Shown here: positions 1,801-35,500 of the stretch, piece by piece
Layout of the letters: every line of letters begins with the position of its first letter
Position numbering within the stretch: position 1 is the stretch's first letter
From: Bugula neritina
Taxonomy: Eukaryota; Animalia; Bryozoa
Direction: 5' to 3'
Assembly: GCA_964035545.1 (NCBI GenBank)
Contig: OZ037765.1
Coordinates: 30,999,504 to 31,063,503, forward strand
DNA length: 64,000 bases
Notes under the pieces: model-generated
The model's input: the letters and a program-made list of their open reading frames with translations, nothing else
Databases searched by the model: none
What the model was told of the DNA's origin: nothing
Program-made: the position numbers and the translations under genes

Positions 1801-1817
1801 CCCATTAGCCAATCCAT
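1801..1817 (-). CDS. MOB2: First coding exon (MDWLMG-) of a probable MOB kinase activator 2; rest of gene lies left of this point or outside the window
   Basis: Minus strand reads ATG GAT TGG CTA ATG GG|GTATGT, downstream of a pyrimidine-rich acceptor (ctcttctattcag, ~1876). MDWLMG matches the MOB2 N-terminus as I remember it (MDWLMGK...). A probable non-coding exon donor (CCAAG|GTGAAT) lies at ~2500. Only 6 codons are visible. Confidence 0.6.
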
Positions 1818-3769: not shown

Positions 3770-4385
3770 TCAATTCTCACTTCTTGGACGGCGGAATAGT
3801 AATATATGTGGCTCTAAAAAACAAGGAAAGTAAAATTATATATTAGATATTATGCTAAAATTTACAATATATTTATTTCGAAAAAAAATTATTAAATACT
3901 ATTAGTCTCCAACACCAAAAATACAGGATGGCTTAAGGAGAATATTACCAATCATTTAGAAATTACATATACAATATCTTGTACCATAAGTATGCATTAC
4001 AGCTAGCTGAAGTGATATAGTAATTGGGAGTTCCTACCAGGTTTGTGTAGCATGTAGTGTATCCAGCCAGGCGACTGCTGCACACCAAGATTTCTCCACT
4101 CAGTTTCAGTCATTAAATGGGTTTTGGGAACAAGCCTTGCGATATCACTTGGGAGTATTACATGTCTACAAAGAGGATATACTAGAGAAATAATGAGAAG
4201 CACACTAAAAATGCATGTTATAGAAAAATCAAAGTACTAGAAACAACAGTGAATCTATATAGTAAGATTAAATTTTCGTCTCATTATTTAATATTAGTTT
4301 TCAAAAGTGCTACATTTTACCTGTACTCATACGTTGTGTCATGGTAACGCTCTGAATAGCATATTTGTGTTACATGAGATGGCAT
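3770..4385 (-). CDS. CKS1: Cyclin-dependent kinase regulatory subunit (CKS1/CKS2/suc1 family), 3 coding exons: 4385-4321, 4165-4038, 3813-3770
   Basis: Spliced product [78 protein letters not shown] carries the hallmark [19 protein letters not shown] and [11 protein letters not shown] motifs. GT-AG introns are in phase. Confidence 0.97.
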
Positions 4386-8770: not shown

Positions 8771-11700
8771 ATGGAGGCAGGTACTGGAAAAGTAGATGAC
8801 TTGGCAGCTTTAGCCAAACTCACCGAGCAGACATTACTCAAAGAGCTGGAGTTACGATACGGTCAAGGACAGATTTATGCAAGTTTATTCTCCAAACTTA
8901 TTCATCCATTTCTGATTTACGATCTCTTTTGCTGCACAAATACTAAACATGCTTTCATAAAGTCGACATTTTTACTTCACTTATGCTCACATAATGTTAA
9001 TGTAATATAATATGTGTTTTAGACCTACATTGGTGATATTCTTGTCGCTGTGAATCCATTCCAGCAACTTCCCCTTTATGATTCCCAGGTACATTATTTA
9101 TATAAATGTTAATGTGATGAAACAAAATTGATTATTACTTATTGATGCTAGAATATAGAGCAACCTGTTCTGTATTTGGATTTCTTGTTGGTATACTTTC
9201 ATTCACACTTTGCTGTAAATTAGAATTTCCTAGTTTATTATAAAAATACATAAGCAGTCTCTATGCCAGCTATATTTACCTCTGCTGTTTTATGTATGAA
9301 CAGAGAAACACTGAGAGGGGGTTGATGTTGGGGGTACACTGAGTAGGGGGTTGATGTTGGGGGTAGACTGAGAAGGGGGTTGATATTAGGGGTATACTGA
9401 GTAGGGGGTTGATGTTGGGGGTATACTGAGTAGGGGGTTGATGTTGGGGGTATACTGAGTAGGGGGTTGATGTTGGGGGTATACTGAGTAGGGGGTTGAT
9501 GTTGGGGGTATACTGAGTAGGGGGTTGAGGTTGGGGGTATACTGAGTAGGGACTCCTAGTAGTTTATAGATCTCAGGAACACTAATGATTTTGTGTTGTG
9601 TTATACAAGATTGAAAATAAATCCTAAATTTAAATTCTGCACTTTGTCATTATTAGCCATCACCACAAAACTAGTAATTCATAAATATTGTCAACTGTAG
9701 TGAATGCTACAAGTTTGTTCTGCATTTGTAGATTTTACTTGTTAGAAAAATTCTGTCTATTATATTGTTATAGCAGTAGTATTTATACTTTATAAACAAT
9801 GTTATCTACTGGTATCTGTATGCAGAGGCCTGCATCAACTCTAGTGCACCTGCATTACATGTCCCTTACTACTGGCTATAGACTATAGAGTGTAGAATAT
9901 AGAGTATAGACTATAGAGTATAGAATATAGAGTATAGATTATATACTATAGAGTATAGAATATAGACTATAGAGTATAGACTATAGAGTATAGAGTAGTA
10001 CATAGAGTATAGGGTATAGAGTATAGAATATAGAGTATATAATATAGAGTATAGAATATAGAGTATAGAGTATAGTATATAGAGTATAGAATATAGACTA
10101 TAGAGTATAGAGTATAGATAGTGAGCATTCCTTGAAGTTACCAGGGTAGTAGTGTGCTGCTGCATAATTCCCCTCTATATGTATCTATTCTCTGTCCTTC
10201 CAGCTAAAAGAATCACGATAATAATGAAAAATGTGATTATTATTAAAAGATAAGCTAATTTATCTATTAGCTTTTCCATTGCCTTACTTTTTGGTAGTTA
10301 ATAACAATTCACATAGGCTGGATATATCATTTGCTTGAATTGCTAATAGTTAGTATTGCTAAACACCAAGAGGTTAAATTTGTTCTAAGATATTTGTTTT
10401 CGAATTACTTGCCAAATAAGTGTTAGCCAATCACCTGTGAAAGGTGCTGCCTCTGTCATTTCAAGTCAAAATATTACCACAGTATTATACATTGACATGA
10501 TGGCTCAGGTGCTTTTACTATACTTACATTCAAGATACATAGATAGAATGAATATACTTACGAATATACTTACACTCACTCACTTACTTACGAATGTACT
10601 TACACTCAGACACGTACAATAAATATACTTACAAATATAGTTACACTCACTCACTTACGAATGCACTTACACTCAGACACATATAATGAATATACTTAGA
10701 TTCAGACTGACTCTTGGTGAAGCATAGCAGGTGCACTAGCTTTTTGAAAATGATGAATAATTTTAATAGCTGAGGTGCATTTGTTACTTTTTGGGGGTTC
10801 AAATAAATATTAGCAATACTAATTCAATGACTCAAATATATCATATATTGATAACTCCACAATCATAAGAATGCAATGTATATATTATTATTATTATCGT
10901 GAACAAGTTATGCTGAAACACATGTATGTAAATTTCATTCAAATTTTATCCAGTGTGATTATTTAGTTTGTGTCATAAAATTTATTTTTCCATTTTAATA
11001 GTTGCCCGACATTACCAAAGTGTAAACTTATTTGTGCTGCCTTTGTTATAGCATTCAAAGGAATACAGAAATATAAAAGTCAAGTCGCAGTTAAAGCCAC
11101 ACATTTTTGCTGTTGCTGACTGTGTATACCAAGACCTGTTGACAAACAAGGAGCCTCAGTGTTGTGTAGTCAGTGGAGAATCTGGAGCAGGTCAGTAGCC
11201 TGTTTTGATTGCTGTTATAGACATCAGTGTTGTGACCAATGCTTAATATTGACACTCACTAAGTCGTAATATTTTATTCGATCTTCTCTTTCTTTCACTT
11301 GAATTAACCAAATGTGGCAATTTGACAAAAACATTTTCACAGTAAAAACTTAGGTTGTTCATGTTTGTTAATATTTAACACTCGTTTACAACCGCACCAC
11401 GTATGCAGTCAGGATGGCCGAGTGGTCTAAGGCGCCAGACTCAAGGCTTGCCTTTCATTGTGTCAATGAGTTAGTGTTCTGGTCCACGAATGTGGGCGTG
11501 GGTTCAAATCCCACTCCTGACAAATTTTTTTTTATAGTGTTCATGTTTTTACATACATGTGCATTTGGCTGTGTGTAACACAGCATCAGCTACACTTAAA
11601 TTTTTTGTTGTTTTTCAAGGAAAAACTGAAACAACCAAGCTGTTGGTTCGACAAATTGTTCAATTGTGCACAAAATCTGGCTCAGTGACTGCTAGCAGTA

Positions 11701-14700
11701 AGCTGCACGATGCACTTATTGAAATAAACCCTCTAATGGAGGCATTTGGAAATGCCCAGACTAAGATGAATGGCAATTCAAGTAGATTTGGAAAATATAT
11801 AGAGCTTCTGTTTTCAGACCAAGGAGAACTATTTGGAGGTAAAATTAGAATAATTTCTAACCGAATAGTAACATATATAAATGTCTGCAATATACTAGAT
11901 TTTCATTTCTGAAATCGGAAAATGCTTTTTATGCAATCATATCTTAACCATTGATTGGTTTTAAAGTCATAATTTTTAATTAACTTTAGGGCGGGTTAGT
12001 ATATTTCTGCTAGAAAAGACCAGAGTTACCGGTTTTAATAAGGAGGAGCAAAACTTTCACATATTCTATCATATGTTTGCTGGACTCAGTGAAAGACAGC
12101 GGACTAGTGTATTGCTCACTAACCCTGACCGTCATCGGTAAGTGTGTATATTAATAATATCATTTAGGTAGATAAGCGTAATATGTATAAAAGTGTAATA
12201 TGTAGAAAAGTGAAATATTTAAAAAAGTGAAATATGTAGAGCAGTGTAATATGTGAAGATGAGTGTAACATGTATAAAAGTGTAATATGTAGAAAATTTT
12301 ATTATGTAGAAAAATGTATTAGGTTCTTTTGATCTGCAGGTTATAGTTATATTTTAATTAGTAAAGAAATATAGTTTTTTTAAGACTATGTTAATATATG
12401 TAGCTAGTAAATTGCTTCTCTAAGAATATGTTATAGCTCAAGTAACTTCCTTATCAAATAACATGTGTATTTTATTGCTACAATAAAGAAGTTAAAGGTA
12501 TTATCAGGGTAACAAAAGAGTCGCTGTGCTTTGCTACAACTTTCTTATTTAAGGTACTCACTCTGTACCACCTTGTAATATACTATTATGATATAATATA
12601 ATCAGGGAGATGATATATAGTTTCTGTTACTATTTATAGAATCCTGAAGTCAGGTGACAGCTGTTCTATATTTACCAGCAAGGCTCACCAGCTTCACCAC
12701 AAAGCGATGTTCATCAAACTTCAGAAGATTTTGACCAATACTGGCTTTTTGCAAGAGGTGAAAATTTTCACCTTTTGGAATGTCTTGTAGACCATCGATT
12801 TTGATATTTCTTTTGTAGAATCTTAGATTGGCAAAATAAATTTTTTAGAATTTTTTCATTTGAGTTTAAAGTTATATAAAGTAAGTTTTAGAATGATATA
12901 TTGAGTAAGTCTGAAATGTTGCAAATACATACCATATTTTATCAATCTTTACAGGACTGTGAAATGATATATGCGTACCTATCAGCTATTCTACACCTCA
13001 CCGATATACAATTTGAACCTGACCAGGAAACTGATGGGGTTTTTATAACTGATGAATACCCCCTTCACGTCTGTAAGTATTTCTTGTATAATTAAGGGTC
13101 TCTTGTAGTTCCTCCCAACTTGATCTTCATTCAGTGTCAGTGAAGGATCTTTTGTTTAATTTCTATGGTTATCTAATAAATAAATCTAATGAATATTATG
13201 CTGTCATGTGATGAACAAGCATAAAGTGGAAAGAATTCACTATTGTACTATATGATATGTATGACTGGTATCTGCTAGCACCTGCTATCCAATTCCAAAC
13301 AGAAAATTGTTTCAAATTCTTTTTACATTGAATTTGGAAAAATATCTGTCGCGACATGTTTAGAGCTGAACAATAATCAAATTGTTGATTTATTTAAATG
13401 TTTACATTCTTTGTGTTTTTACATTAGCTACTGAGCTACTGGGCGTGTCTGCTGAAGAGATGGCCACCGCACTGATATCTAATGTACATTTAATTAGAGG
13501 TTTGTGAATATCATTACTCTAACAGTTAAATTTGAAAAAATCAGCCCTTCTTGATTAATTTCCTGAGTGTCTTGCATGTGATAAATATCTGCACAAGGCA
13601 GTTGGAATAAAATAAACACCCAATTTAGACAGCAACATTAGACACCAACTGGCATACGAGATCTGGATTTAAACAGATTAAATTTTTACAAATCTCATTG
13701 AAACCAGCTGCACACAGCTTTTAGTGACTGCTGAAGTAAAGGTATCACTATCTCTAGGCACTGTTGACTAAGCTAATAGGTGGACAAATTATTGTGTAAA
13801 TAATTATACTCTCTGTCAAATCTGCATTTGTAAGCAAAGGAATGTGAAGATGAAATAGCAATCCACTTGTGTACATATCTGTAAGGATATAATAATGATT
13901 TATGTAAGTTATATATCTTGGCAGAGGTTCTAATCATCTCTTAGTCATACTGCCAGGCCAGTTGGACAGGTTTATCAAGTTCAGTGAGTCATTTTGGGCA
14001 ATCTTGACAGATATGACAGTCTCTACCACAAAATGCAATATTTTAGCATAGACTATAAATTGTAGATTGACTAAAATAGAGTCGCACTGCCTAGCAATGA
14101 GAGCGGTGTATGTATCATTTCTAGGCATTAAAACAGGATGGGGCATATAACAGCTAGTAGAATATAAAGACTGTATTGTATTTCATGAATATAGATAGCT
14201 CTATCTTATTATAATTGGTCCTTTGTTTAAATGAAATTCCATGTATAAATACCAGAACACTGATGTAGGTATAAATTAGTAGTTTAGAAGACAGAAGGTT
14301 TTCACTCGCTGTCATTATGCTACCACGCTATTGGCTTCCTAGTCTATAATAAAGCGAATAGCATGCCTGGATAAATAACATAAACTGATTATACAAACAT
14401 GGACTTTGCCCTGACTCTAAATAAAGTATTAGGTAGTATTAGGTCGTAGAAGCTATCATGGATGACATCCAGTGAGAAATTTGCTGCACACATGTTCAAA
14501 CACTATTATTCTTATTTGTAAAGATGAGTTTAATAATTTTAAGTAATATTATAAAGCATACAATCACTTTATACACAGTCTAAGACAGAAACTTTACTTA
14601 TCAATAGTTTATTTAGAGCGTTTCACATAATAGAAAGGGTAGAGTGACTTTTTGCATACAGAATAATATAAAAACATTGTAAGGGTTTGCTTTAGGTTGG

Positions 14701-16546
14701 TAACTAAATATAAGATATTATTGATATTCAATAAACTCTTGCTTAGTATGAAGAGCAGTTTATAGTGTAAACATACTAAGTGGTGTTACAGTAGTTGTAT
14801 ATTACTAACTGCTGGTACTAACATGCCTGCAGGAAGTTGTAGCATACTAGACAGTGCATAGATGTTATCACCATGCATATTGGCCATTATATAGAGTTAT
14901 AGACTATGCCGTGTATAACTTGCACAAAGTAGCACATGCACGCACCTGCTGACTATCCTCAACTAGCAGTGTCAATCAACTAGTCAGCTGTTTAGTGTAT
15001 ACAAGCTGGTGTCATTAGGGTCACGATTTCCTGTTAAATGAAGGCTATTGTATTCTTGTCATGACCAGACTCTGCATTATATCACTCCATTGCTATTTAA
15101 GCTGGAATGTCAGAGTATTTCTACTGTTTATAGTATTTGATATGCTCCTAGTCCGTTTAGGTGCATTAACTGAGAAATTCCAATAGCCCAAGTTCTTTAA
15201 TTTGCTTTATAAAATTTCATTTGCTATATTTTTCATCTAGAACACAAGCTTTTTTCATTACTGCACCTACCCCTCCTAGTTTAACTGATTTCTAACTGGC
15301 CTATAGTTATATAATCGTGGATGCTGCATAGTTTTGACTTGCACTGTCACAATTTACTCTCTACTTTGTATTCAATCATGCTTGTAGTGAAACCTGATGA
15401 CATTTATGCAATTCTATACGATGTAGTGTCATGTTTTATTGCTATTATTAGCTACAATAAACGTAAAAAATGACTAATATCTTTTCTTTTAAAATTGCTT
15501 GTCATCCTATTTTAGGTGAAACAATTGTGAATCTGAAGAACTTAGTTCAAGCTGGTGATGGAAGAGACGCCTTAGCAAAAGCTCTCTATTCCAGATTATT
15601 TGGCTGGATTATCAGCAAAATTAATAACAAGTTGAAACCTGACCTCTCTTATGCGTAAGTGTCTGTTGGTATGGTAATCATATTATAATCTCTATTGAAA
15701 TACCATCAGATTTGCATGCAGTTGATTCATAGCAACATGTATATCTGCCCTAAACTTAGTTTTTAGAACAATTCATGTTACCAGATAAATTGTACTATCT
15801 AAGTTTAAGAGCATTTTTTCAAATGAAACCATTCCAACTGTGACTTATAATATCTGCCTGCAGGCTTTACATTATAAACAGAGCTGCGAATGAATTATAT
15901 TTGTTGAATTATGTTGAAATAATACTAGCTAAGCTTTCAGAGATAAAGCTTGAAACCAGAGTAACTACAAGAACACAAAGAGCCTTGTCAATTATAAATA
16001 TATACTTTTGATGTAGTATTAATGTGCTTTTGTGCTTTTATATTTCGTATATTGAAATATAGTAATAATATAATCAATATATAACATAATATAATCAATA
16101 TAATATATAACATAATATTGTCTCAGCTATGTACTTTTGACTGTAGGCCGAAGAAATCATCCTGCCCTGTTATTGGCTTACTGGATATCGCTGGTTTTGA
16201 GAATTTCACGTCTAATGGTTTTGAACAGCTCTGCATCAACGCATCCAATGAGCAGCTACAGCACTACTTCAATCAGCATGTCTTTGCATGGGAGAAGAGA
16301 GATCTGGACAAGGAGGGAGTTAAAACTAGTCACATTTCTTTCACTAATAACTCAGAAATCCTTGGCATGTTCATTGAGGTAATTCAAGCAGATTGGGCCA
16401 TATTTTAATATATCATAGTGTAATAATAATTGTTTGGAGCTATTTTTGTTGAGACACCCTGGTTAGTGAAAGTGCTACTACTACTGCTACTGCTACTGCT
16501 ACTACTACTACTACTACTACTGCTACTGCTACTGCTACTGCTACTG

Positions 16547-16635
<89 letters not shown>

Positions 16636-19600
16636 GTTACTAATACTACTTCTGCTACTACTACTGCTGCTACTACTGCTGCTGCTACTGCTGCTGCTAT
16701 TGCTACTAGTACTACTACTAATAGTACTACTACTGATAGTAATAGTGGTGGTAATTGTGATATATAGTAGGTGGTGGTACTGGAGGTAGTGATGCAATAT
16801 ACTTTTGGTGCTGCTCTTTATTGTAATGTTGCTGTTGTCTACTTGATATTGAAGAGACCCTTAGGACTCTACGCACTGATAGACGAGGAGAGCAAGTTCC
16901 CTAAGGCTACAGCTAACAGTTTACTGGAGAAGGTCAGGAAACACTTGGTTAAATATTCATGTATAAAAAAGGAGAAAGGAAGAGAACCCCTGTTTACTAT
17001 TCAACATTACGCTGGACCAGTATGTACTATTAAATCATATGCTGAAAACTGGGTCCAACTTTGTGGTCCCTCAATTGTATTATTTTGCCGGTAGTAATGT
17101 AATTCACTTGGTTAATTTGATCATTATTTGACATCACAATCCCTCAGTATTCATACATATTGTATGAGATTATTTAATATTTAATTTAAGCAGATTGTGG
17201 TGTTGTGTGAATAGTTGTGTGTACATTATCTAGTGGAATAGAGCTGTATTCACCAGGTGATAGAAGTAATCTAATGATTATTATGACTCTGAAATTAGTC
17301 CAAGTGGTTTGCCTAGCTTAATGAATATTGCATATACTATATGCAAATTACATGTTCTAAGATAATTAAGATCTGTTTTTACTACACATAACAGTTGCCT
17401 AATTTAATAGAATGTTTTCTAAAGTTATAATAGATAAATGGTAAATTTTCAAATTATTATACTATGCATGTAGTTACTAGTTATTACAATAATATATTAC
17501 ATAAACAATATGCACTATAGTGGATTTATCATATTCAAGTTTATTATACTTGGATCCTAATATACTTACTATATACTCACTATGTACATACTTACTATAT
17601 ACTCACTATATACTCACTATATACTTACTAAATACTTACTATATACTTACTATATACCAGTTGAACCTGCTATAAATTATCTGCATCCTCTGCCCACCAG
17701 GTCACCTACTCTGTCTCTGGGATGCTGGAAACTAACAGAGACACTCTCAGTCAGAACATTCTGGAATGTTTGGAGCGCAGCGAGTCTGGCATGATCTATC
17801 AGCTCTTTTCTGCTCGATTCTCTGATAATGGGGAGTTGTCCACACCGTAAGTTCATCAAAGATGGTATAAGTTTACAGTCTGAGGCAGACTCAAAGCTTT
17901 ATTAGCATGAGCACTTAATTTTCTACTCATGAAAATCTTTAAGCAACATCTTTTCCCTGTAGATACTTGAAAATATAAAAATAATTTAACTAGTAATGAA
18001 ATAGAATATACATTGTAGGGGTACACTGAATAAGATATAAATGTACATGTATCAGAGGTATAAGGTTATCTATCAAATGTTTTATATGTTACTACTATGC
18101 ATCATCACCAAGTAGTACTAGACAGCGGTAAGAGTTTATATAAACAGAATTTAGGTTGTATAGAAATGTGTTGCAATTATGTAGTCATATTACTTGATAA
18201 TTTGCCAGACCTTTACAACAGGGAAGCTACAGTAAGTATGTAAATACGTTGCTAAGTAAGCTACAGCAAATATTTAAATACATTACTAAGTAAGCTACAG
18301 TAAGTATGAAAAAAGTAAGTTGGTAAGTTAGAATTTTAGCTCGTACACAGGCAAAATATGTAACTCTACTAATAGTTATGGTATCTTTATAAAAACAATA
18401 TGAATCACAGTGTGGTGTTGACAAGTCAGGCCATAACATGTCTGCATGCTATGGTGAAACCCTGCAAGCTTGCTGCACAACATGTCTTACAGAACTGACA
18501 TGCATTCGTATCATTATCATACAGCAATGTGTGACCTACATCACTGTATGATGGAGGGAAACTTGTCATCATAAATTATAATATTTTTTTTAGTTATTTA
18601 TTAGTCTGTGACAGTAAACATCAAGGTCACAGATGATTGGATGATTTATAATCACGGTGACTGCTATTGGTTGAATACTTTTTTACACAAATTATTGCTA
18701 CTAACTCTTGTTTTAATAGTTTGTGCTTATTTTTTATGCTACTAATGCCAATATGATATTAAATTTACTGGTGAAATATGCTGTAGGAACCAGGAGCTAC
18801 GCAGAAAGAAGTCTATTCTGATGTGTAAGCAGCCGACGTTAGAAAGAGGAAAAAGTCTTTCGAAAACAGCTGGCAGAAAAGTTAGACAAAAGTAAGCATA
18901 ATTTTCTCTCAAAACCTCTATGACGAACTTCTTTTTCATTTTCACCTTTTTGATATAAGGTAAAACTATATTCAGGATACCGACATGTGGAGTGTTGATG
19001 TATTGATGCATTAGTAAAAGCTGTGATGGATTTTGTTGACCTCGCTACACTTGTGTTTTCACCAGCTGTTGCCATTTTGAACTGCTTTAAAGAGCTTTGA
19101 CTGCATCTTGATATTGTGAGGTTCAAACGTTCAGTTCATTGGTTGGTCTATCAATGAGATTTTTATTGAACTTTGCATAATTTTTTGTATGACTTGCAGC
19201 ATGAAGAGAGCGCTTAAAGAGATCCAAGATGATTCTTTTTATAAGCACAGGACTGTTGGCTCGCAGTTCCAGGTGAATTAATTTAAATATGTTTGAAGTC
19301 ATTGATTCTATTAAACTCTGTTATTAGGCGTTATCTTCTTTTGATATATTATAATGGATATTGCTAACTTTAATTAGTATATTCACAAATTAACAAATTA
19401 AATAAGAAATATCTACTTCTTATAATAGTGGCTATTTTTTAGTTATTTGAGAGATTGTTTTGAAAATCCAGGTCTGCATAACAAAAATGGTTTTGTATTA
19501 TCTTAAATTTAGGAGATGGATTGCAGCAAAATTTTTGAATGTTCATCACCATAGGAGTTACTTTCTCATGTTGTAAGCTTTGTTTCTAGGATTCCCTGAC

Positions 19601-22600
19601 TGCTCTGATGACTAAGCTAATGCAATGCCAGCCTCATTTTATTAGATGCATCAAACCTAACAACTCACAGGCTAGTCAGTTGTTTGAGAGGAAACTGGTT
19701 GCCCAGCAACTGCGATACACTGGCATCTTAGAGACTGTAAGGATAAGACACGAAGGGTTTCCCGTCCGTCTGCCATTTCAAGTATTTCTAGACCGGTTCG
19801 TAGTTTTCACTTTCCAATTTCAAACTCGTTGAGGTTAATTGTGTAAAATTTTCAAAATTTTGAACAAATCTGTGTTTTAATTTTCATTTATTGCTTTATT
19901 CTTAGTCTTAGCCATATTTTACTGTAAAAACTTGTCTCATTGTTAGTGTACACATGTGGTTGTATTAAGAGCAAAACGCTTTATAGGTTATATGGGATTT
20001 ATCTTCTCTTGTGATCAACCACTAATCTTCATTATTAATGTTAGCAAATTTTTTTCTCTTAGGTACAAGTTCGTAAGTTATCCTCTCACAGCAAAAGTGG
20101 AGGCGGGGACTGCTGCATGCCACACGGTATTAAGAGAAGCTGGTCTCCACAAGTGGGAGCTGGGCACTAGGAAGGTTGGCAGTTTTACCATCCCATCATT
20201 TCTTTCTAAGATGTGTTAATATATTATATTGCGTGGCTTTCACCTTGGCGTAATAAACTTATGTATTAATTGACTCAACTTTTAGGAAGATTTCCTACAG
20301 GTAGGAAATCTGAAAGCGCCCTTAGTTTGGCTGATTGTTTCTGATATTGCTAGTTGATGCTTTTTTTCTAAATTTTGCGCATACACATGTCTTTAAAACT
20401 TGAAATATTTTATATTGAACAAGTTTGCAAATAAATTTGCTTTGCATTATTGTGAATTATTTATAGTAATGTAGTCTTTTTTCTCATTATTTGTTTTTTT
20501 TTTGTCATTTTTCATTGTTTGTTATTTAATATATGTAAATATTTCAGGTGTTCCTAAGGTACTGGCACCCGGAGCAGCTGAAACTGGTGATGGAGAGGAG
20601 GGTGAGGCAGGTTGTGCTGGTGCAGAGTCTAGTCAGAAGGTTCATAGGATGCAGGAAAGTGCAGCAACTCCGTCAAATACTTGAGGCGAGAAAACAAGCT
20701 CAAACGAAGTCCTTCCTCATGATGGTGGCAGAACGGAGTCAGCAAATGCACGCTGACTTGAAAGAATTACATAACCTGGATGTGACTAAACACAAGCAGA
20801 ATGTAAGATATGTGTAACACTAATAAAGTGTGTATGATGTAGACTAACGCATTGAAATTGGGTGACTTTTCATTTTGATGCAGTTGAATTATTTTGATTT
20901 CAAATGTGAGACAATAGCTGTAAAATTATAAGTGCATTTATTTGAAATGCCTAGTATTGCAAATATAATAGTATATTACATGATAAAACTGCTTCAATAC
21001 AGTTTATATTTTACTGATAAACGCATGTTACAGTTTATAAGGCTGCGTAGAATTACAAAAAAATTTGCTAATTCTGTATATCACTGACTTGAACTGAAGT
21101 GCCTGAAGAATTCAAGTTTTTTAAATATTAATATATACATTTTTTATGGATACATCAGTTTGACTTAATGTAATAATTCATTAAATTAGGCAATGTGCTG
21201 TTCAAATTCAGTTACCTTTTATACAACTATCTATAATATACGTATGTATACATGCACAATATACAGTATACATATACTAGATATTTCTAATGCCAATATT
21301 ATTCACTGCCAAATGTTTAGTTAAATGACTTGGCGAGGGAGGCTGGAGAGTCTAAAATTCGTGAGCAAATGATTGAAGAGAAAAGACGAAAGTTAGCCTT
21401 AGCCGAAGCGGAGCGGGAGAAGAAAGCTGCTGAACTAAGGCTGGCCGAGGCTCAGAAGCGAATACAAGAATTAGAAACAACTCGTAAAGTAGAAACTCCT
21501 TCTTCCATTAGTTCTTCATCTTCAAGGTTGGGGTTGAAACAGTAATTTTATAATATTACTTTGCATTCGGTTCAATAAATGCGCCTTTTTTATAAGAATG
21601 ATGATATGACAACTCCAGAATTAACACCCAAATATGTCATTTGACTACACATGTAATGCTACTTCAGCTGATCTCAAACCATTATGTTTCTGCAGTGGGT
21701 TTGAAGATGATCTTCCTTCACCTGAGTTGAGTAACGAGGAGCCTAAACACACGTGGCGTAAGCAGAGAGCCAACCATAAAGATCACGTGGCTGGACTCCG
21801 GAATCTTCTGGAATCGAAGGCAGAACCACCTGAACAGGAGAATGTGAGACTCAATAAACAAAAATGGGTACCAATCAATGAAAGACTGTACGCCACACCG
21901 GTTTGTCATTATGTTTAGTTAAATTTTGATTATTATAGGCTAAAAATGGGATTAAACCATTGCATTTAATTTGAACTTTAACTTGCTTTTTGTTGCATTT
22001 GTGAGTTTTGATAGAGTCAGAAGTGATTAGTTTCCATTTAATATTCAAATTTAGACTTTTGATGATCATTTTCATTGTTCCCAAATTGGCTACTCTTGTA
22101 TATCTTTATCATGGACATATTGGTACCTATTTCATATTTGTAAACAATGTTTTGTCAGAGGTGCCAAATATGATCTCAACTTTTTAAATCCTGGCCTTCT
22201 GAAAGCAAATTCAAATTTAATTAATATTTCCTCAAAATGCAAATTAAATTTTTTATGTAGTAGTGTGCATGATGAAAATTAGGTACTGAAATATCTGTCC
22301 AGCTGTTATAAATCCGCTTAAAAGAGACATGGTCATTTTTGATAAAAATGTAAATCAGTCAAGTTTTACTATCTCATAAAGCTATAAATCTGAAAACAGC
22401 TCCAAGCATAATAATGTTGGCACCCCTGTATTTTGCATTTGTTTATTTCAGGCATGTCCTTATGGCGTTGCTAGAAAGTCTCCAGCAAGACCCCTTCATT
22501 TACGAAGGTAAGTTTTTAGTTATACCGAAAATTTCACTCCTAACAAAAAAAGTTCAGAGAATGTTTATTTAAATAATATACTAAGTTGCTTTGGAGTTTT

Positions 22601-25600
22601 ACCATTAACTGCACTCAAATGAGTGGATTTTAGAAGTTTTGAAGAATTCTAGAATTCCATTATAAGTAGTATTGTGAGGTTGCTCTAACATTTGGTGATT
22701 ATACCTCCAAATTTTTTCGAATAATGTTTTTCAATTTTTCAAGACATTAAATGTTATACTACACTGTCAGTAGTGTTTGGGTATGACAAGAATATTTAGT
22801 AAGGAGTTAGTTATATCATTGGAACACATGAATGCTTTTTATTTTAGCATCTTTTCAGACCCTAGTCATGGTCAGGTCTATGATCCTGAGAATGTATCTC
22901 ATTACGCCAGACAATCAAGTCACAGCAAGATATTAGTCAACAAAGTGGAACACTATAATGTAAGTGTTATTCTCTTGTATTTACAGGTGTATTGTCATTA
23001 TAAAGCTGTATGTACACCTATGAAACTGTACGTACACCTATGAAACTGTACGTACACATATGAAACTGTATGTACACATATGAAACTGTACGTACACATA
23101 TGAAACTGTATGTACACATGAAACTGTATGTACACATATGAAATTTTATGTACCCTTGTGAAGTTGTATGTACCCTTGTACCCTTTTATGTACACATATA
23201 AACTTGCATATGCGTGTGTTAAATTGTCTGTACCCAGGAAATTGTATGTACACATATGTAAGTATGTACATGTATGAAGTAGTATGTACAAATACCAAGG
23301 CATGTCTACATGGGTAGCTATTCCTTGCGATAATAGTATTGTCACTAAATTATATATCTTTTACAAATAGACTGTGTTTCATTGTTTTTTTCTGCTTTTT
23401 AGGGACTAATTCAGGAAGCGTTACAAAGTGAATCAGAAACCCAGAATAAAAGCAATTGGGGAAAACTTGTATATATGGAGAAATCTCAAAGGTTAGTGTA
23501 CAAGTTATACTATCATGCAAAACTACTGCATATTTCAGCTACAGAATGTATTATTATGAAATTAATGAACAAAATTTTTGAAGGTTACCCTTTATTAAGA
23601 TTTGCTGATAATATAAAAATTATATAATACATTTGTATTTCAATATTCAGCTTATAAATAATTCACACAATAATACTTTTGATCTTTATTTCTGATTTAC
23701 CTTTTTAGTATTAGTTTTTTAAATACCATAATGCTTTGGTAATCGTGGTAAAGCAACTGTTGTGAACATTGTTTTATCTGTGAAAAATCTAGATATGAAA
23801 CTTTGTTATTCTAAAGTTTTTGTCTCTTGCTTAAATTTTGCCTCGGACGCAATTGAACCCAATAGTTTGACTGTTCATTATCTGCATAGCTGTTTCTTTC
23901 ACTTACAGGTGTGCAAGCTTCATTCTAACTGAGCCAGTTATAAAGGTAGATGGAGCACACTACTCCTCTGACCCTTCTAATCATGTGGCTTTAAACTCCG
24001 TTGAAAATTTATTTCGAGACGAGCAAGTTGGAAAAATAAGAGAATACATCGGGAAGGTAAATTTCAAACTACTGGTATTAGTTGAAATATGAATATAATG
24101 AAATATTGAAAATATAAAAATAAATAAATGAATGTTATAAATACATAAATATTATGAATATGGAGTATTATAAAGGAATACATTTACTAGTCAGATTTGG
24201 TAAATTGATTGTAAAAGAAGCGAGCTAATTACTAGCCACTTGCTGGTTTGATGTTTTTTTACGTGCCTTTGGCTAACTGATACTTATATGCTTGTATTAT
24301 ATTGTAATGGGTGACATGCATGTTGTTTTGTACATTATTTAGGGCATGCAACTCCAAATAGACACCGAAGGTGACATATGGGCCAAGAAACTAGGAATGA
24401 ATGACATAATAGTTCAAGATCACAATGATCCGTCATTGAGTTGTATATCAGAAGAGGTTATTAAAGATAGAGGGAGGTTGCAGAAGGATAAGAGGGTTAA
24501 GGTAATCTTAGACTCCTGTAGCTTCAGTTAAAATTTATGCTAAAATAACTAGATTGATTTGATTTGTTTAAAACTTGCTTGTCAAGCTAAATTTACGCTG
24601 ACATTAGTCTGATGAACTAGGGACTGTAGTTAGCAGCATTGATGATAATCATAGGTTAAGGTAGAATGACTTATGTAGGTATGTAATTTAATGAAGGAAT
24701 GTATTTACGTTTATTCAAATTTGCAGATTTTTGTATAATTGTCATGCTTTTATTTTATATTTAATTTTTTTGTAGATTTTTGATATGAAAGAATTTCGGA
24801 GTCATGTGATCTTGGAAATGCACAAGGCAGGATTAGGCAGAATAAATCTTAAAGATCTTTATTCTCGTTGCTGCATTGTATCCTTGACATTGGTGAAGTC
24901 TTCGATAGATATTATGGAAACGCCATGTTGGATCAACATAATAAACTTAGGAGCTCTTCGAATGTTAAGAGATGAAAATGGTAGGTCATTAGTCAACGTG
25001 AATAAAACATATACAGCAATATTTTCAATTGTCAAATTATTTCAATTTATGATGTTAACATTTCAGTTATGGCAGACTTTGAAAATGAGTTGAAGAAAAT
25101 CATGAGGTCAAACATTGACTTCACCAAGATTAGTCAACTGGTAAGAACTCTCTTACAACTACAGTTATCGCTTGTTGCAATATTTTAGGCAAATTCATAA
25201 TGTTTTACTTTTGTTTCCTTAATATGCGGTTAGAATATTTTATAGCCTCCAATTGCTAAACAAAAGCCGAAGAAAACAGATAAAAAAAAGGAAAAACTAC
25301 CTCAACGAAAAGATCAAGAAGCAGGCAAGGTCTTTGGTTAGTTGGTTTTTAAAATTATCGAGTAATAAGAGTGTTCTTACATAAATAACTCTGCAAAATT
25401 CTACAATGCTGCAAAAATCGGAACTACAAGTCTTATCGTGAAATATTGGAAGAGTCTCTTGAAATTCACCTTCTGTTCCGTGTTATTGTTATGATTATTA
25501 TCAGTTTGCGTCGCAGATTATAATTCTTAGCTTCATGCAAGTTGCAATATGTTTGCTTTCACATAAAAAAAAAATATTTATAACAATTCAAACAATATTT

Positions 25601-25786
25601 TTGCTAATTTTCATCCAATTTAAATATTTTTGAAAACTAAGATTGATTGTATGACTTTCTGTTTGTTCAGTCCTGCCTGAGCCTGTACTGGATAGAGCAT
25701 CAAAGCCGGTCGGTGATTTCCAATTCAAAAGTCCTAGGAAGTGGGCCAAGTTAAAACAGAATAGCGTGAGCCAACTAACCGAGTAG
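8771..25786 (+). CDS. Unconventional myosin: class-III-like motor without kinase domain, 1 IQ, charged helix, C-terminal Smad MH2-like domain. Exons: 8771-8878, 9023-9088, 11052-11190, 11620-11838, 11990-12137, 12640-12757, 12955-13072, 13428-13499, 15516-15654, 16147-16378, 16855-17019, 17701-17846, 18787-18891, 19200-19272, 19590-19795, 20063-20174, 20548-20802, 21321-21526, 21696-21900, 22452-22507, 22848-22959, 23403-23491, 23909-24056, 24343-24501, 24776-24980, 25067-25140, 25246-25336, 25671-25786
   Basis: Motor motifs: DDLAAL...IY|TYIGDILVAVNPF, PHIFAVAD, P-loop GESGAGKTE, switch I NGNSSRFGKY, LLEKTRV, QNFHIFY, switch II DIAGFE, FEQLCIN..NEQLQ, PHFIRCIKPN, QLRYTGILETVRIR..GFP, KVFLRYWH. 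IQ motif VQSLVRRFIGCRK. An in-frame TGA at 8747 precedes the ATG. All exon phases join. The donor of the second-to-last exon is uncertain. Confidence 0.92.
9310..9551 (+). repeat. G-rich 29-bp minisatellite (ACTGAGTAGGGGGTTGATGTTGGGGGTAT) x~8 in myosin intron 2
   Basis: Directly visible; two G5 runs per unit. Confidence 0.95.
9876..10118. repeat. 7-bp tandem repeat (NTATAGA)n
   Basis: Directly visible; it produces the spurious ORF 9911-10165. Confidence 0.95.
10550..10698. repeat. ~65-70-bp dimer built from ATATACTTAC/CACT subunits
   Basis: Two imperfect copies of ...atatacttacactcactcacttacgaatg..cttacactcagacac. Confidence 0.8.
11408..11522 (+). tRNA. trnL-CAA: tRNA-Leu(CAA) with 31-nt intron (11446-11476), nested in myosin intron 3
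   Basis: GTCAGGATGGCCGAGTGGTCTAAGGCGCCAGACTCAAG[intron]TTCTGGTCCACGAATGTGGGCGTGGGTTCAAATCCCACTCCTGACA. Acceptor stem GTCAGGA/TCCTGAC, A and B boxes, long variable arm, CAA anticodon at 11442-11444. Confidence 0.95.
11525..11533 (+). terminator. Pol III oligo-T terminator of the tRNA-Leu
   Basis: T9 run immediately 3' of the tRNA. Confidence 0.8.
16474..16737. repeat. (CTA/CTG)n trinucleotide microsatellite in a myosin intron
   Basis: Directly visible; it produces the poly-Leu and poly-Ser pseudo-ORFs. Confidence 0.97.
17559..17657. repeat. 11-bp tandem repeat (ATATACTYACT)n upstream of acceptor 17700
   Basis: About 9 copies visible. Confidence 0.9.
18224..18308 (+). repeat. 34-bp repeat x2.5 (AAGCTACAGTAAGTATGTAAATACGTTGCTAAGT) spanning a candidate microexon donor
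   Basis: Copies start at 18224, 18258 and 18292. Confidence 0.8.
22156..22428. mobile_element. Non-autonomous hAT-like element (MITE)
   Basis: Termini CAGAGGTGCCAA...TTGGCACCCCTG. The 8-bp flanks TGTTTTGT / TATTTTGC match at 6/8, consistent with a decayed TSD. Confidence 0.6.
23003..23290. repeat. 20-bp minisatellite (TATGAAACTGTAYGTACACM)n, decaying rightwards
   Basis: Directly visible, just after donor 22960. Confidence 0.9.
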
Positions 25787-26143: not shown

Positions 26144-29100
26144 TCATGAGTTGGTGAACACAAAGGTGGACCAGCCACCACACTTGACAGACTTAAACTT
26201 AGTGTTGGTTGCAGTGTACAAGTTAGGTCTGTCCTGGACTATCACATCCTTTGGTAGTAATAACTGTCCATAGCCATTCCATCCCCAGGAATATAGTTTG
26301 CCATCACCTGTGACAGAATGTGGGCATTACTATGTGGTGCTACTATTAGCAAGTATATAGGCTATGTGGTGTATACATATATTTCAGAATATGATGTTCT
26401 AAAGTTATCCGTGCATTTCTGTAAGTAACAAGTCACACATTTTTTAATAGCAAACTGAGATGTGAGCATATTTTAAAGTATTGCTAACACATAGTATGCT
26501 GCCATTTTATAATATTTGAACTAAGACATGAAAAATGCCATATTTGTGGATAAAATGGCCTCTTTTTAACTCTATCATTTAACTATATACTACTCTGCTA
26601 CTACATTCAGTTTTTCATTTCCAATAATGAGAAAAATAAATTAATACTAACTCGTCACGGCCGCAGAGTGTCGCGAACCACAGGATATGCTAGTAATAGT
26701 GATGTCACAGTTGTCTTCAAACAACAAACTGGGATACATAATCATGCTGTGACCAACTCTGTCACCACACTGAGGTTCACCATGAGAGTCCTTCAGGCAA
26801 GGCTTCCCAACTTGACCACTCTCATTCCAACCCCAACTGTACACATCTCCTGTATCTAAACAATAGAGTATAGACCTCATCAGAAGGCATGACAGGATTC
26901 AAAGAGTGGTGTGAGTGACATCTAGTTTAACATGTGACCTTTTCAAGCAACTTAGTAATAAATGAAAACATGTAATCTTATTATAATTGTTGTGTTTTAA
27001 GTGTATAGAGATATTTATTGTCGAAGACTGAAAGAAAGTAGCAATGTGAAAAAGGTTATATCATAAGTTATAAGTTTCAAGTTACAAGTGTGAGACGCAA
27101 GTGTAGATAAGTGAAAAATGGGGGGCGGGTTTATACTAGTCAAATAGGTTAGCTTTTGTGTAGTAGCTATAATAAATGTGGAAAAAGCATAATATAGCTG
27201 GCCTAGCTGAGATATGTGAAAAGCTATCATGCATTAGGGAAAAGCTTTCCCAGCTTATGTAAAGTCCCAACAATCATTTTACATACTCAATAAAATAAAC
27301 TGTGAAATGTTTGACAACTTTAAAATTTATACAGTATTGAATTATTCATGTTTACATTATTGAAGCTATTCTAATACTTGTTTCAAGTTAAATAAGATAT
27401 AGTAACACGTATTACTTGCCGCTAATCACCATTTAACAGGACTATTGCAATCAAAGTGTTCTGCAAAGTCAATTTAGATCCTGCTAACTCTGTTTCTTTT
27501 CAAATCTTAACTTCACCAAACATATTGCAAGTTTAAAGTTTCAATCCAGAAAATGCAGCTTATTTTAACCAGAATTTTCTTTCTGATCTATTATAAACAC
27601 CAACTGTTAAGACATACCACTTAATACTAGAGTATGCCATCCCCCAGCAACTGCGTCTACAATGAATACTCCAGAGAGGGCTTCAACAAGTCTAGGTTCA
27701 GTCAAAGACTCCAGATCTCCGTGTCCAAGCTGGCCTCGGCTATCGAGATTAATTATATTTTAAATGAGAAGGAAAGTTCTCAATTAGGAGAAAGAAATTA
27801 AACTTTTTTATCACAAAATGAGAAAAGTTACAAAAGAAACCTATTGCTGGTTACGCCCAGCTACACAAGTATAATATTTGTCCTACTAATCAGTATGTGA
27901 TGACTAAATTTCCTGTTTTAATCATGTAAAGCAAAGATTTCCAGTTAACTCAAGTCTTGTTGATAAATGTAGCTGACAAAAGTCCCAAAACTATCCTCTC
28001 CTTTATGGTGAAAAAAAACTTTCATTATTTAAAAAATAATGTAAAAAGCAACAAATAGTTATTTGATCAAATTAAATTACTGGCACCCTGTCCATACAGC
28101 ATGCCTGTAAACATCTAGTGTTGAAAATAAAGTTAATTGCAAACCTTTTCTAAATACAAGCACTGCATTACATGACAAGAGGTTGCAGGTGTGACCTGGA
28201 ATGAGAGCACCTGGTCTACATGCTCTTATGTTTTACAGCTTCAACATAGTGAAGCATTTAAGGAAAGAATATGAGTTCTCAGTCCCCAGTGGCCTTGGAG
28301 ATGAAGGCTGTACATAGTGCCTAAGTATTCATTATTTATCAGTACTAACCTTCCTCCACCAAACGTATAGACATGCCCAAGTGTAGTCAATATGACTACA
28401 TGCTCTTTACCACAAGAGACACGTCGTACCTTTATATTTGACAACAGAATCTTCTCTGGCTGAGCAGTGGATAAGTTGGACAAAGTCCATAAAGATCCCA
28501 CATCTAGCAAATAAGTTTTCTGGTTAGATTAGCACAATTTTTACAATAAAAACTCAAAACTGACAGCAATAACTAACCAATACAACAATAAAATATACTT
28601 AATTTAACATAAATTGATAAAAAAACTACAGCTATTAATTTTAAATTATAATGTAGAGTTAACACTAGCTAGCAGTTATTTGATTGAATCTATATTGTGT
28701 TAAAAAGTGTGATTCAATACATTTCTTAATGGTCCTTGATGATGGCACGAAGGGTATTTAATGAAGGGTTTTTTTAGTTACTTAATGAAAATTTAAATCT
28801 GACTGTACATGCTCAAAGTAAGAAAAGCACATCATATTTTTTCAGATGAAAGAAATTTCTCTGTAGCTCCTAACACAAGAGAGGATGTGTTGAATAACTT
28901 GAATGGGCACCTGGCTTTTCATTAGGTTTGAAATATATGAGAAAAAAATCATTGAAATAACAAATAATACCTGTATAAAAATAGAGCGATTTATCTGTAC
29001 AAGACAATCCTTGTATGTACTCAGGTAGGTTCAGTTCCACTACATCTAATTTACAGCTACTTTCTCCAGCTTCAAGGTCTTTGAAACATAGCAGAGTGGA

Positions 29101-29394
29101 TCTGCTATTATCTTCGGCAATGCATATTCTTTTATCAAAATACGTAACACTGAGATTGCAAGTAGAAGATTGTGTCAGCATGCTTGTAATTATCATTCGC
29201 CATCCGACATACTGTAAATCTTTATTACACAATGCATATAACTTGTTGTTAAAACTTTTTTCAATGGCTAAAGTTAGATTACAAACATTTGAATCAGGCG
29301 GTGTGACATCTGAATCACTAGCAGACACTTGCTTCTGAGTGACATGTAGTGTAAGACAGTCCTGCTCTATAACTCCACCATATATGTTATTCAT
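26144..29394 (-). CDS. RCCD1: RCC1 domain-containing protein 1-like; exons 29394-28971, 28503-28350, 27739-27618, 26855-26652, 26307-26144 (start codon uncertain)
   Basis: RCC1 repeats: [106 protein letters not shown]. Exon phases are consistent. Confidence 0.85.
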
Positions 29395-30869
29395 ATTGAA
29401 TAGTCGGAAATAACTAGCTTTTGTTAATACGCATTAGCACATATAAGTCCAAGAAAAAATGAGCTGAGTTGCATCCAATGCCTATTTGCACTCGTGCTTG
29501 CCATCTATAAATATAAATACATGAAATTCTGAAATAATTTAGAGATGAGCATCAGCAAACCATTACAACTTGACAGCCGATATTGGGAGCTTTCTCTAAA
29601 TGCTAATGTTGGGGGTAATAAGTTTCAGCCAGAATAAGACTATGCTTGTTAACTGGAAAACCGTATCCAATTGCAATTTTTCATAAACATAGCAAACTAT
29701 TTACTTTCATTTCATGTAAGCAGATAATTTGTACAAATGTTAGTACTTGAAGGTGATTATTTATTAGTCTATTGAGTGACCAAACATTCCTGAATGCAAG
29801 TTTCATTCTTATATTATTCAAATAAATATTGCCATAACTTTACTACGATTGCAGCTCCAAAAAATAAATGAAACATAAGTTGAATGATATGACAGAAAAG
29901 TATTAGTAATGCCTACAGTTACATAAAGAAACTTTTGATAAGTTTATAGCTATTACTATTGTTAGTAGTAATAGTATTAATAATAGAACTTTATAATAGT
30001 ATGAATACAAAAATAATATATTATTAGTCATAGTTATAGTGTGTAACTAACATTCATTATGAATATGTCATAATTAACTTGTATCACCATTTTTACTAAT
30101 AGTAATAATAATAGCAATTGATGAATTAAAATACTCTTAAAACTAAGAAATATCAACTACAATAACTATAAGTGAATATCAATAACAATATGTCAGCAAG
30201 CTGCAGTGCAACAGTATAAATTTAAAACTGAGTTTAATGTCATTATCATTATGATAATTATTATATTAAATATTTGAGCATTACTATTTAATTTTACTTT
30301 TTAGCTTTTAGTATTGACTGAATTTAATATTTATATTACTAGATTTACTTTTACTTTTAGTGTATTATTATGATTATAACAATAATTATTATTACTGATT
30401 AGTTATTAGCTTAGGAATCTGAATACGGAATAGCAACAATTCCAAACTTATACTTATAGTCATTACCTTTCTTTTAAAACTGATAAATATTAGACTTAGA
30501 GAATGTATTAATTAATTACTACTTGTCAAGTACAAAAAGAAACTGCAAAATATTCACTTTTGTAATTGAGTATAACTGTATAAGTATTTAGGACTGACAA
30601 TTTTGTTGATAAAACTAGAACATGCCCTGTGGATCTTTTTCCTTATTTCTTTTATGTTTGATAATTTAGTTCACAATCAGTGTACCACATGCACAAAAAA
30701 ATATATTTGTTTATTGATATAAATTTACCTGCAACTTTATTGCTAAAGTGCAACAAAACAAAACCAATCATGATGCATAAATATTATAAGTATTTATCAA
30801 GTTTGACCAATCCCTAAACGTGGAAGCACGTGCTAGACGATCTTCACCCTAATACATTCTTGTTGATAG

Positions 30870-32564: not shown

Positions 32565-35500
32565 ATGAAGCCTCAGGGAGGTGAACACCCCCTCACAGTG
32601 AGTTTACTAGTTAAAAATTGACCAAGTTGACTAACTTTTTTAACATAAATTGTTTTACATTTTTTCTAAAATTTAAAGTTCTGTTTGGACATTGCTAAAC
32701 TCTTATGTTGTAACATCAGTATGTGTAGCCTGTGATTCTATTAAACAGGTTGCGGTGAGGGTGAGGCCAATGACGGAACATGAGATTTTGTCAGGTTGTA
32801 CACAAGTTGCCCATACGGTGGACAACCAGGTTTGTTGAAAACATTTTTTTATTTAACAATTATGTGCTTTAATTTCTTTTTCATAAATCAACTGCTTGTC
32901 ATTTTCTAATATAAGTGTGTTTCTAAACAGCTTTGCTAGTTTTATTACTAAACTTGGCAAAAGTGAATTGCTGCTTTATGCATTTTAAAATTGAAAAAGA
33001 AAATGTTGGAATCGTTGTTTATGGTTTTCTGTTGAAAGTTATGTTTTGTATATCATCAGATGGTGGTGCTGCTGGACCCTACGGAGGACCCTGATGATAT
33101 CCTTAGAGTGAATCGCTCCAGAGAAAGAAGATACATGTTTGATCACGCCTTCAACGATATTGCTGACCAGGTATAGCCACTGGCAGCGTAGAACCAGCAC
33201 TTCTCTTATTTATCTTAAGCTAATATTAGTATAGAAGTTGTATTGCTACAAACTAAGCCAATCTATCATATAAATGGCAGGCTGATAGTGTTTTGTTTGC
33301 TCAACAATTGGCTCTAATGACTGTTGTGGAAATATAATATATCTTTAATGAGAAAGTCTACTTGACATAATTAAATGTTTGCAGCCTGTTGCTGTCACGT
33401 ATTATGAGAAATTATGTTGCGTATTTGAGGCAGCGTCAGCACCTATTTCGTCTTCTCAACAAATGGAATTGCATTGTCTGTGAACAATTATTGAATATTG
33501 ATATTAATTAGCAGTTGTTTATTTGTTTATTTCTCCATGGTGCTCTTGTCTTACTATTGTTACAAATAACAATGTGCCTTGCTCTGCACAGCTCATAGCT
33601 GTCACCATCGTATTATACTTAGTTAATTACTTGATCCTATTACGCCACTGGTTCACACAAAGTTCATATTTTCACATGCTATCAGAGGCAGTGAAATAAG
33701 ACCATATATGATGCCTTATGATGAGCTATTGCTATTGCTATTGCAGTGCTAGCTTCTTATTTCTGATTTATTCTTCAAAGTTTCATAGTCTAATGTTTTA
33801 CCTACTTTAGGAGGAGGTGTACCAAGTCACTACTCGATTTCTCATTGACCAAGTTATAAATGGATATAATGGAACCGTGTTTGCATACGGAGCTACTGGT
33901 ATGTATCATGTTTGTGCCACACTCATTTCTAATAACTGCAATAATTGTATCTTTACTAATCCTCTTATTTATTGGTTACTATTTAAGTCAATGAAATATT
34001 GCAAGATTTATTATGCCATATTATACAAAATTTGAGTTTATTTGTTCTATAACCAAAGTTAAGACATATTAGGCTGTATACTTGATGAATATCAAGTCTG
34101 TGTTTATGTGTATACTTACAGTATTACACTATTATACCTATACATGCTGAAAGCGTAGTGTTGTTTGCAAAACTCATATTAAATATTCTCATACATTGAA
34201 TATCCCAGGTGCTGGAAAAACATACACAATGCTGGGCACTCAGGATAATCCTGGTATATACTCGAGAGCTCTCAACGATCTCTTCTTGCTTGTTGCTAAA
34301 TATGAAGAGGAAAATATATACAATGTGTCTATGTCATACTTAGAGGTTTGTTTGTACTATGGAGATGAGAACTCATAACTTCTGTATATTATAGGATTTA
34401 GGATTTGATTTTCTAGGAATTGCTTGACTTTAGCCATGTGCTGGTCTGTGTATGTTTGTCTGTGTAACCACTTGAAGTGGCCATCTCTTGGTTACTAATA
34501 ACTTGTTTATTTATATAAATAAATTATCAAGAAATTAGATAATGTCAAGCAGCTAAAATTTATTCTAGTATTTCAATGCATCATGACACAGTTTCTTGCC
34601 GGGCTGATTAATTGAAGTCCTGGGCATTTAGTTGGTTGGCTGTGTTTGAGCCAAAAGACATTTTGAACTACATGTTTTCATGTTTATTAAGCAAAGAAAT
34701 GTATTTATTTATTTATTCTTGTTTTCTAATCACCAACAAGACTTATTGATGGACCTTGACATGTTTGCAGATTTACAATGAAATGGTGAGGGATTTATTG
34801 AACCCATCTTCAGGCTATTTGGAGATGAGAGAAGATGCAAAGGGTGGGGTGCAAGTAGCCAGCCTTTCTGAAGTGTCAACAGCATCAACTGAGGAGGTGA
34901 GGCTATGCTCACAGCTTGTAACAGTTTAATTAGTTTTTTAGTTCTTTTACCATCCAGCGAGTCTAGCATCTATTTTTAGAAAGTTTATAATTTACTAAAT
35001 CTATCTAATATAAAAATAGTAGGCTAGGTATATATAGTAAAAAAATCCTAACATATACATGCGCACGCTCACAATACCACAATATAAATAAACATCATGA
35101 CAGAAAAGAGAAAAAAATGTCATATCAATTCTATCTGTAGAGTTGAATGACGCCTGAATGTAATTTCTTATATTATATAATATTTTTATAATGTACAAAA
35201 AGTTATATTACTTAGAATTAGAAAGTTTTAGGCTTTCTAGCAACACAAACAGGTGTAGAAAATCTTTAAGTAATTTTATTCGTAATCTTATAATGTTTTT
35301 CATGCAGCAATTATACTTATTATAGCATGCAGGGTGAATGTTTGAACATATCTTCATTGTAATAATTCTGTCTAGACACACAATCTGTATAATGAAACAT
35401 TTGCCATTTAGATGCAGGTTTTTGTCAGGTTGCTGTAAATTTAGTATTAATTTTTGTTTTAAGATATACAATTGCTTTGCATACTTATTAAAATCTACAG

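Follow-up and report, generated by a model that had tools for sequence, protein, structure and literature searches.

The window, a 64,000-nucleotide stretch of the Bugula neritina genome, carries a gene for a myosin with a C-terminal MH2 domain which, judged from its sequence, is a lophotrochozoan member of the already catalogued myosin-MH2 (class-80-like) group. The tail of this protein and Expansion/Rebuf (Exp/Reb) share an N-alpha-MH2 domain by homology, a conclusion well supported by fold, L3 loop and intron positions. Our analysis established the structure and splicing of the gene, the motifs and the placement of its motor, and the type of its tail (N-alpha-MH2), with the helix modelled on the Lingula orthologue. 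With a probability of about 0.6, we propose that the product may be an active, probably single-headed motor whose monomeric N-alpha-MH2 domain would hold a membrane or secretory complex on apical actin or carry it there.

Gene structure and splicing

Exon joining and a frame check gave one open frame of 1293 aa in 28 exons on the + strand, running from the ATG at 8771 to the TAG at 25784–25786. Database searches were run exon by exon; checking the frame, cutting out domains and building trees relied on the joined translation. The protein contains, in order, a motor, one IQ-like motif, a charged helix, a linker, the MH2 domain (about residues 1000–1197) and a basic tail of 93 residues. On the basis of open frame and motifs, the motor was assigned to 16 exons: 8771–8878, 9023–9088, 11052–11190, 11620–11838, 11990–12137, 12640–12757, 12955–13072, 13428–13499, 15516–15654, 16147–16378, 16855–17019, 17701–17846, 18787–18891, 19200–19272, 19590–19795 and 20063–20174. 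Pfam Myosin_head was matched by single exons of this region (8771..20174), which also match the myosin-MH2 proteins of Acanthaster and a sea cucumber when compared exon by exon. Inspection of the translation found the P-loop, switch I, switch II and SH1 motifs intact. An N-terminal kinase is absent: an in-frame stop lies just 5' of the ATG at 8771 and the offset from the start to the P-loop is that found in Lingula and Owenia, both of which argue against such a domain. Intron 1 of the coding region has an apparent GC donor at 8878–8879, as read from the genomic letters.

The end of the motor, the IQ-like motif (residue 747) and the helix following it are encoded in 20548..20802, as assigned from frame, homologue matches and joints. 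The charged helix (21321..21526; 46% E/K/R over 61 residues) resembles in composition a single-alpha-helix or short coiled-coil, from which its role is presumed. It is followed by linker exons supported by joints and frame (21696–21900, 22452–22507 and 22848–22959), whose product is probably disordered. The first-pass annotation had proposed that four exons, spliced and in frame with the motor, IQ and helix, encode an MH2 domain, and this was borne out by AG/GT ends, compatible phases (0/2, 2/0, 0/0 and 0/1), the joints seen in RNA-like contigs and the 1293-aa frame. Exon 1 of the domain (23403..23491), located by alignment, intron position and the joint 22959/23403, encodes the N-alpha helix region and the first strand; exon 2 (23909..24056; Pfam, joints and intron comparison) ends at IGK, with a phase-0 intron there; exon 3 (24343..24501; Pfam and alignment) covers the H2 region, with a length as in myosin tails and Exp; and exon 4 (24776..24980; Pfam and PDB match) encodes the helix bundle and a short L3 loop with no Smad GWG motif. 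The MH2 domain is not terminal, as three further exons (25067–25140, 25246–25336 and 25671–25786), placed by joints and frame up to the stop at 25784–25786, add 93 aa with a basic stretch and an SPRKWAK motif common to other myosin-MH2 tails, with no SSxS.

Splicing was examined with RNA-like contigs from 4 runs in 4 studies, which are assembled sequences presumed to derive from RNA, mostly 95–99% identical to the window, and were aligned on 5,941 letters covering the myosin exons from 19200 onward. GT..AG joints lead from the last motor exon via IQ, helix and linker into the MH2 domain and tail. Overlapping spliced contigs cover all junctions from 19795 to 24056 and those from 24980 onward; one contig (run X9, record 17) extends from 21360 to 24980 and crosses 24501/24776, and a second covers the motor up to 20703. 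The joint 20802/21321 is spanned in runs X1 and X9, its exact cut being blurred by sequence differences, and is also supported by loose contig ends in runs X2 and X3. Twelve of the exons, in the same order and followed by the same RCC1-repeat neighbour, were found in a metagenome contig (L061) of a probable second bryozoan. That a myosin gene and a neighbouring standalone Exp-like gene have been misread as one is extremely improbable. Such a reading would suit the fact that no single contig or molecule among the RNA-like contigs of the 4 runs extends from motor to MH2, as well as the 494-aa Gigantopelta protein, which is a tail without a motor; it conflicts with the overlapping spliced contigs across the junctions (including record 17 of X9 over 24501/24776), with a frame open along the whole model, and with more than 20 full-length orthologues that carry both domains.

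Placement of the motor among myosins

The combination of myosin and MH2, which had been put forward as possibly new, is already catalogued (PMC5583752, PMC3942036). Class-80 myosins are defined by a C-terminal MH2 domain and, as defined, occur in echinoderms and hemichordates only, while lophotrochozoan orphans have the same layout (Kollmar and Muehlhausen 2017, PMC5583752); the orphan motors branch next to, or intermixed with, those of the class-36 myosin-chitin synthases, with a placement unresolved in the authors' trees (PMC5583752). Myosin-MH2 proteins have also been described from Salpingoeca and Oscarella and proposed as the origin of the Smad MH2 domain (Sebe-Pedros 2014, PMC3942036). 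These choanoflagellate and sponge proteins, myosin-III-like with the same two-domain combination, are likened here from their published description and lie outside our trees. We found myosin and MH2 together in echinoderms, hemichordates, a brachiopod, annelids, molluscs and corals, the full-length relatives coming from echinoderms, hemichordates, Lingula, Owenia, a chiton, bivalves, gastropods and Montipora and being mostly annotated as myosin-III-like. Two proteins (P0001 and P0014) proved to be repeat artefacts.

In the motor tree, all myosin-MH2 proteins form one clade (99/97), within which the window protein groups with Lingula, Owenia and molluscs (95/93); the tree comprises the motors returned by the search for relatives, which yielded none of class 36 or class 16. 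Grouping of the window protein with myosin III was rejected (p-AU 0.0003), and class III was ruled out by this value together with the absence of the kinase. Class 36 was also ruled out, there being no transmembrane segments or chitin synthase domain in a protein whose tail ends at 25786; the motors of the class-36 myosin-chitin synthases of molluscs, annelids, rotifers and brachiopods have been published as sister to, or intermixed with, the myosin-MH2 motors. The window protein thus shares with the class-80 and orphan myosins a kinase-less, myosin-III-related motor with a C-terminal MH2 domain, membership of the same clade (99/97) and a C-terminal W[AS]K motif of the family SPRKxWAK type, and its identity to Lingula XP_013418100 is 53% in the motor and 43% in the MH2 domain. 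Its tail beyond the MH2 domain is shorter than theirs and has a single W[AS][KR] motif where they have two, and it falls with the lophotrochozoan orphans.

Some family members have altered or missing motor motifs, namely those of Littorina (P0034) and Montipora (P0015 and P0059), and a protein from Gigantopelta (P0192) is a 494-aa tail only. These may represent repeated motor decay or, for Gigantopelta, a split annotation.

The tail domain is of the Expansion/Rebuf type

Three of the four MH2 exons match the Pfam MH2 domain (PF03166) in single-exon searches, in colinear order: exon 2 (23909) at positions 22–64 (E 0.028), exon 3 (24343) at positions 65–91 (E 0.079) and exon 4 (24776) at positions 115–173 (E 3.5e-5), which upheld the MH2 assignment of the first-pass annotation. 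Exon 1 (23403–23491, 29 aa) gave no Pfam match. Against PDB, exon 24776–24980 matched 4R9P (Expansion) with E 4.8e-7 and SMAD4 with E 0.44; exons 23909 and 24343 gave no MH2 match there, only spurious repeat-protein matches. An Atlas search with exon 24776 returned unrelated matches, all under 0.9.

The Expansion domain is defined by an N-alpha helix that blocks Smad-type trimers and by a short L3 loop (PMC4388265). The L3 loop of the window protein aligns with 4R9P without a gap, but with a six-residue gap to SMAD4 (11 vs 17 residues). The fold was predicted for the tail of the Lingula orthologue as a stand-in for the window protein (pLDDT 95, with a helix at residues 6–23), and this model matches 4R9P with TM 0.91 and Z 30.9 over 205/210 residues, N-alpha included. 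Against Smads, the same model gave TM of about 0.7 and Z of about 20–21, with the alignment starting at about residue 22 and N-alpha uncovered. The structural part of the expected Expansion likeness was thus obtained on an orthologue, the window tail being represented by this proxy. The window N-alpha exon scored weakly (14 bits against the profile of myosin tails, 2 bits against that of Exp); it aligns at the N-alpha position, where it has one inserted residue and shares an intron, its fold being taken from the Lingula proxy. Every MH2 exon of the window scored higher on profiles of myosin tails than on those of Exp, and higher on Exp than on Smads; the identity of the domain is 43% to Lingula, 25–35% to Exp and 19–28% to Smads.

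Three phase-0 introns are common to the window gene and Exp genes, one where the N-alpha helix begins, one following IGQ (IGK in the window) and one ahead of FDMK, and each is present in several Exp-type loci. Only the last of them is common to the Smad4 gene of the Bugula genome and the window gene, and the Smad introns of this genome near the middle (IGK/IGQ) site are in phase 1 and lie either five bases before it or one base after it. In addition, an Exp intron within the DGFR stretch is absent from the window gene, and a window intron after KSQ is absent from Exp.

A tree of MH2 domains, strictly cut so that tail sequence was excluded, set the Smads apart (100/98) and placed Exp as a clade inside an unresolved group with the myosin tails. 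The phylogeny separates the domain from Smads and leaves Exp and myosin tails in a polytomy, in which nesting of Exp within the myosin tails is neither shown nor rejected (p-AU 0.28 for monophyly of the myosin tails). Neither of the two proteins returned by a homologue search with a mixed alignment was a named Exp or Smad, so the Exp rows are mostly unnamed metagenome sequences, from loci verified as Exp against 4R9P (E 7e-96), and the Smad rows come from the Bugula genome itself.

By sequence and by fold, 4R9P of Expansion/Rebuf (PMC4388265, PMC4305360, PMC9894549) is thus the best PDB match of the myosin-MH2 domain, and the suggested likeness to these proteins proved correct in the short L3 loop, the length of the H2 region and the three phase-0 introns and, as judged on the Lingula model, in the position of the N-alpha helix. 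Exp/Reb proteins, described from arthropods and nematodes, differ in being motor-less, with the domain near the N-terminus, and in having CM2, whereas the window domain begins at about residue 1000, behind a motor. The DDPYYCGL-type motif, which we took as CM2 from its conservation in Exp homologues, occurs in most Exp-type transcripts, but was found neither in the window protein nor in any of the 24 myosin-MH2 proteins compared. With a motor and no CM2, the window protein is by its domain make-up not an Exp/Reb protein.

Relationship to Smads

The window protein has the MH2 fold and one intron position in common with Smad4, but its identity to Smads is 19–28% and it branches apart from them (100/98). 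MH1 is absent, the N-terminal part being filled by motor and linker, and so are a GWG-type L3 loop and the C-terminal SSxS of R-Smads; the earlier view that it is no R-Smad therefore stands, and as far as its letters tell, it is not a Smad. The genome holds four Smads of its own, of which the Smad1/5 gene (L058, contig 2 at 31.43 Mb) has an apparent GC donor one base after IGK. We consider it very improbable that the protein is a cytoskeletal regulator of TGF-beta/BMP signalling whose MH2 domain binds receptors or sequesters Smads. The fold, the shared Smad4 intron position and the proposal that myosin-MH2 was the source of the Smad MH2 domain (PMC3942036) would agree with such a role; however, the short L3 loop without GWG, the lack of SSxS and MH1, the predicted N-alpha helix over the trimer face and the presence of four Smads in the genome do not, and Exp takes no part in TGF-beta signalling (PMC4388265).

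Possible function and history

In the reading favoured above, the motor, with its one IQ motif and charged helix as lever, would act on apical or microvillar actin. The N-alpha helix would cover the Smad trimer surface, which points to the MH2 domain as a monomeric docking module rather than a part of TGF-beta signalling; in Exp, this helix clashes with Smad trimer formation, and the protein acts at the apical membrane (PMC4388265, PMC9894549). At the apical cortex, the N-alpha-MH2 domain may carry or tether a protein complex of membrane or secretory type, and the apical matrix secretion machinery is the leading candidate for this cargo. For oligomeric state, direction, location and cargo, this proposal draws on myosin III-like motors and Exp/Reb.

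It is unlikely that the protein is instead a signalling scaffold on actin, with an MH2 surface that tunes RTK or other membrane signalling and little transport. Exp has been reported to regulate RTK signalling, in work cited in PMC4388265, and myosin-III-like relatives bear SH2 and phosphatase domains (PMC3942036); moreover, the degenerate motors of Littorina and Montipora suggest that the tail of some family members may work without motility. On the other hand, the motor motifs of the window protein are intact, and its MH2 domain has no phospho-binding basic L3 pocket.

The first-pass annotation had linked the gene to chitin. That the product is a motorised equivalent of Exp/Reb, which positions or licenses chitin synthase at apical microvilli during cuticle formation, appears doubtful, even with a tail of the Exp type. 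Chitin translocation in the fly requires the N-alpha-MH2 part of the protein, and CM2 merely aids apical localisation, a task that a motor could do (PMC9894549); published trees also set these motors beside the class-36 myosin-chitin synthases (PMC5583752). The Bugula genome contains five chitin synthase loci, all on chromosomes other than that of the window gene, and no myosin head was found within 30 kb upstream of any of them in a search whose positive control worked. No standalone Exp was found in the genome either: an Exp query matched only the window gene convincingly, which is therefore the only N-alpha-MH2 protein detectable there. Against a chitin role, CM2 is missing, and good conservation of the family extends to echinoderms and hemichordates, animals not known for chitin cuticles; this conservation would point to a more general job. 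Furthermore, Kkv and Reb failed to co-immunoprecipitate in the fly (PMC9894549), and fly midgut and fungi produce chitin without Exp (PMC4305360). The genome facts allow a chitin role without demonstrating it, and the putative shared function, neither shown nor refuted, is the weak step.

We think it likely that Exp/Reb of arthropods and nematodes descend from a myosin-MH2 gene that lost its motor and kept its tail. A broader scenario is speculative: Exp/Reb would be headless class-80 myosins, the motor-bearing form being the ancestral apical positioning factor for chitin synthase, of which ecdysozoans kept the tail alone and lophotrochozoans the whole protein, and in the latter a sister motor would have fused to chitin synthase, giving class 36.

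Our search of the literature, in a collection without most subscription papers, found no link between myosin-MH2 and Exp/Reb and no functional study of class-80 myosins, which are named there only in their defining paper. The word "myosin" is absent from the Exp papers (PMC9894549 and PMC4305360) and from the structure paper (PMC4388265), and together with the single naming of class-80 this makes the link look unreported. Two literatures are thus joined here, one describing Exp/Reb as a protostome invention and the other crediting class-80 myosins with a generic MH2 domain. Should Exp/Reb be myosin tails without a motor, the way they act on chitin synthase would best be understood as cargo adaptation on apical actin. 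The myosin-MH2 proteins would then be candidates for shaping chitin on microvilli, as in chaetae, shells and the bryozoan cuticle, and the relationship bears on the proposal that the Smad MH2 domain arose from a myosin tail.

Neighbouring genes and other observations

A tRNA gene lies in a myosin intron at 11408–11522 (+) (Rfam RF00005, 52 bits); it was missed by ARAGORN and reads as tRNA-Leu(CAA) with an intron. A long ACT/GCT trinucleotide repeat occupies 16470–16760 in another part of the myosin introns, and further simple repeats occur at about 9310–9550, 9880–10120 and 23000–23290. An RCC1-repeat gene (26147–28528, −) is situated tail-to-tail with the myosin gene and is followed by a kinesin gene (33811–37827, +), a neighbour order similar to that on contig L061. 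The window also contains a CKS gene (1677–4236, −), a HID1 gene (59076–62222, −) and a long coiled-coil gene (49844–57940, +), which may resemble CEP131. Two open stretches, 28873–29433 (−, 187 codons) and 45182–45499 (+, 106 codons), have no Pfam match. Another myosin gene is located about 45 kb before the window start (contig 1 at 30942319–30954054, −). Three assembly contigs (C101, C126 and C127) encode near-complete myosin heads with many in-frame TAA and TAG codons but no TGA, which fits a ciliate code, and they are probably contigs of a co-sequenced organism.
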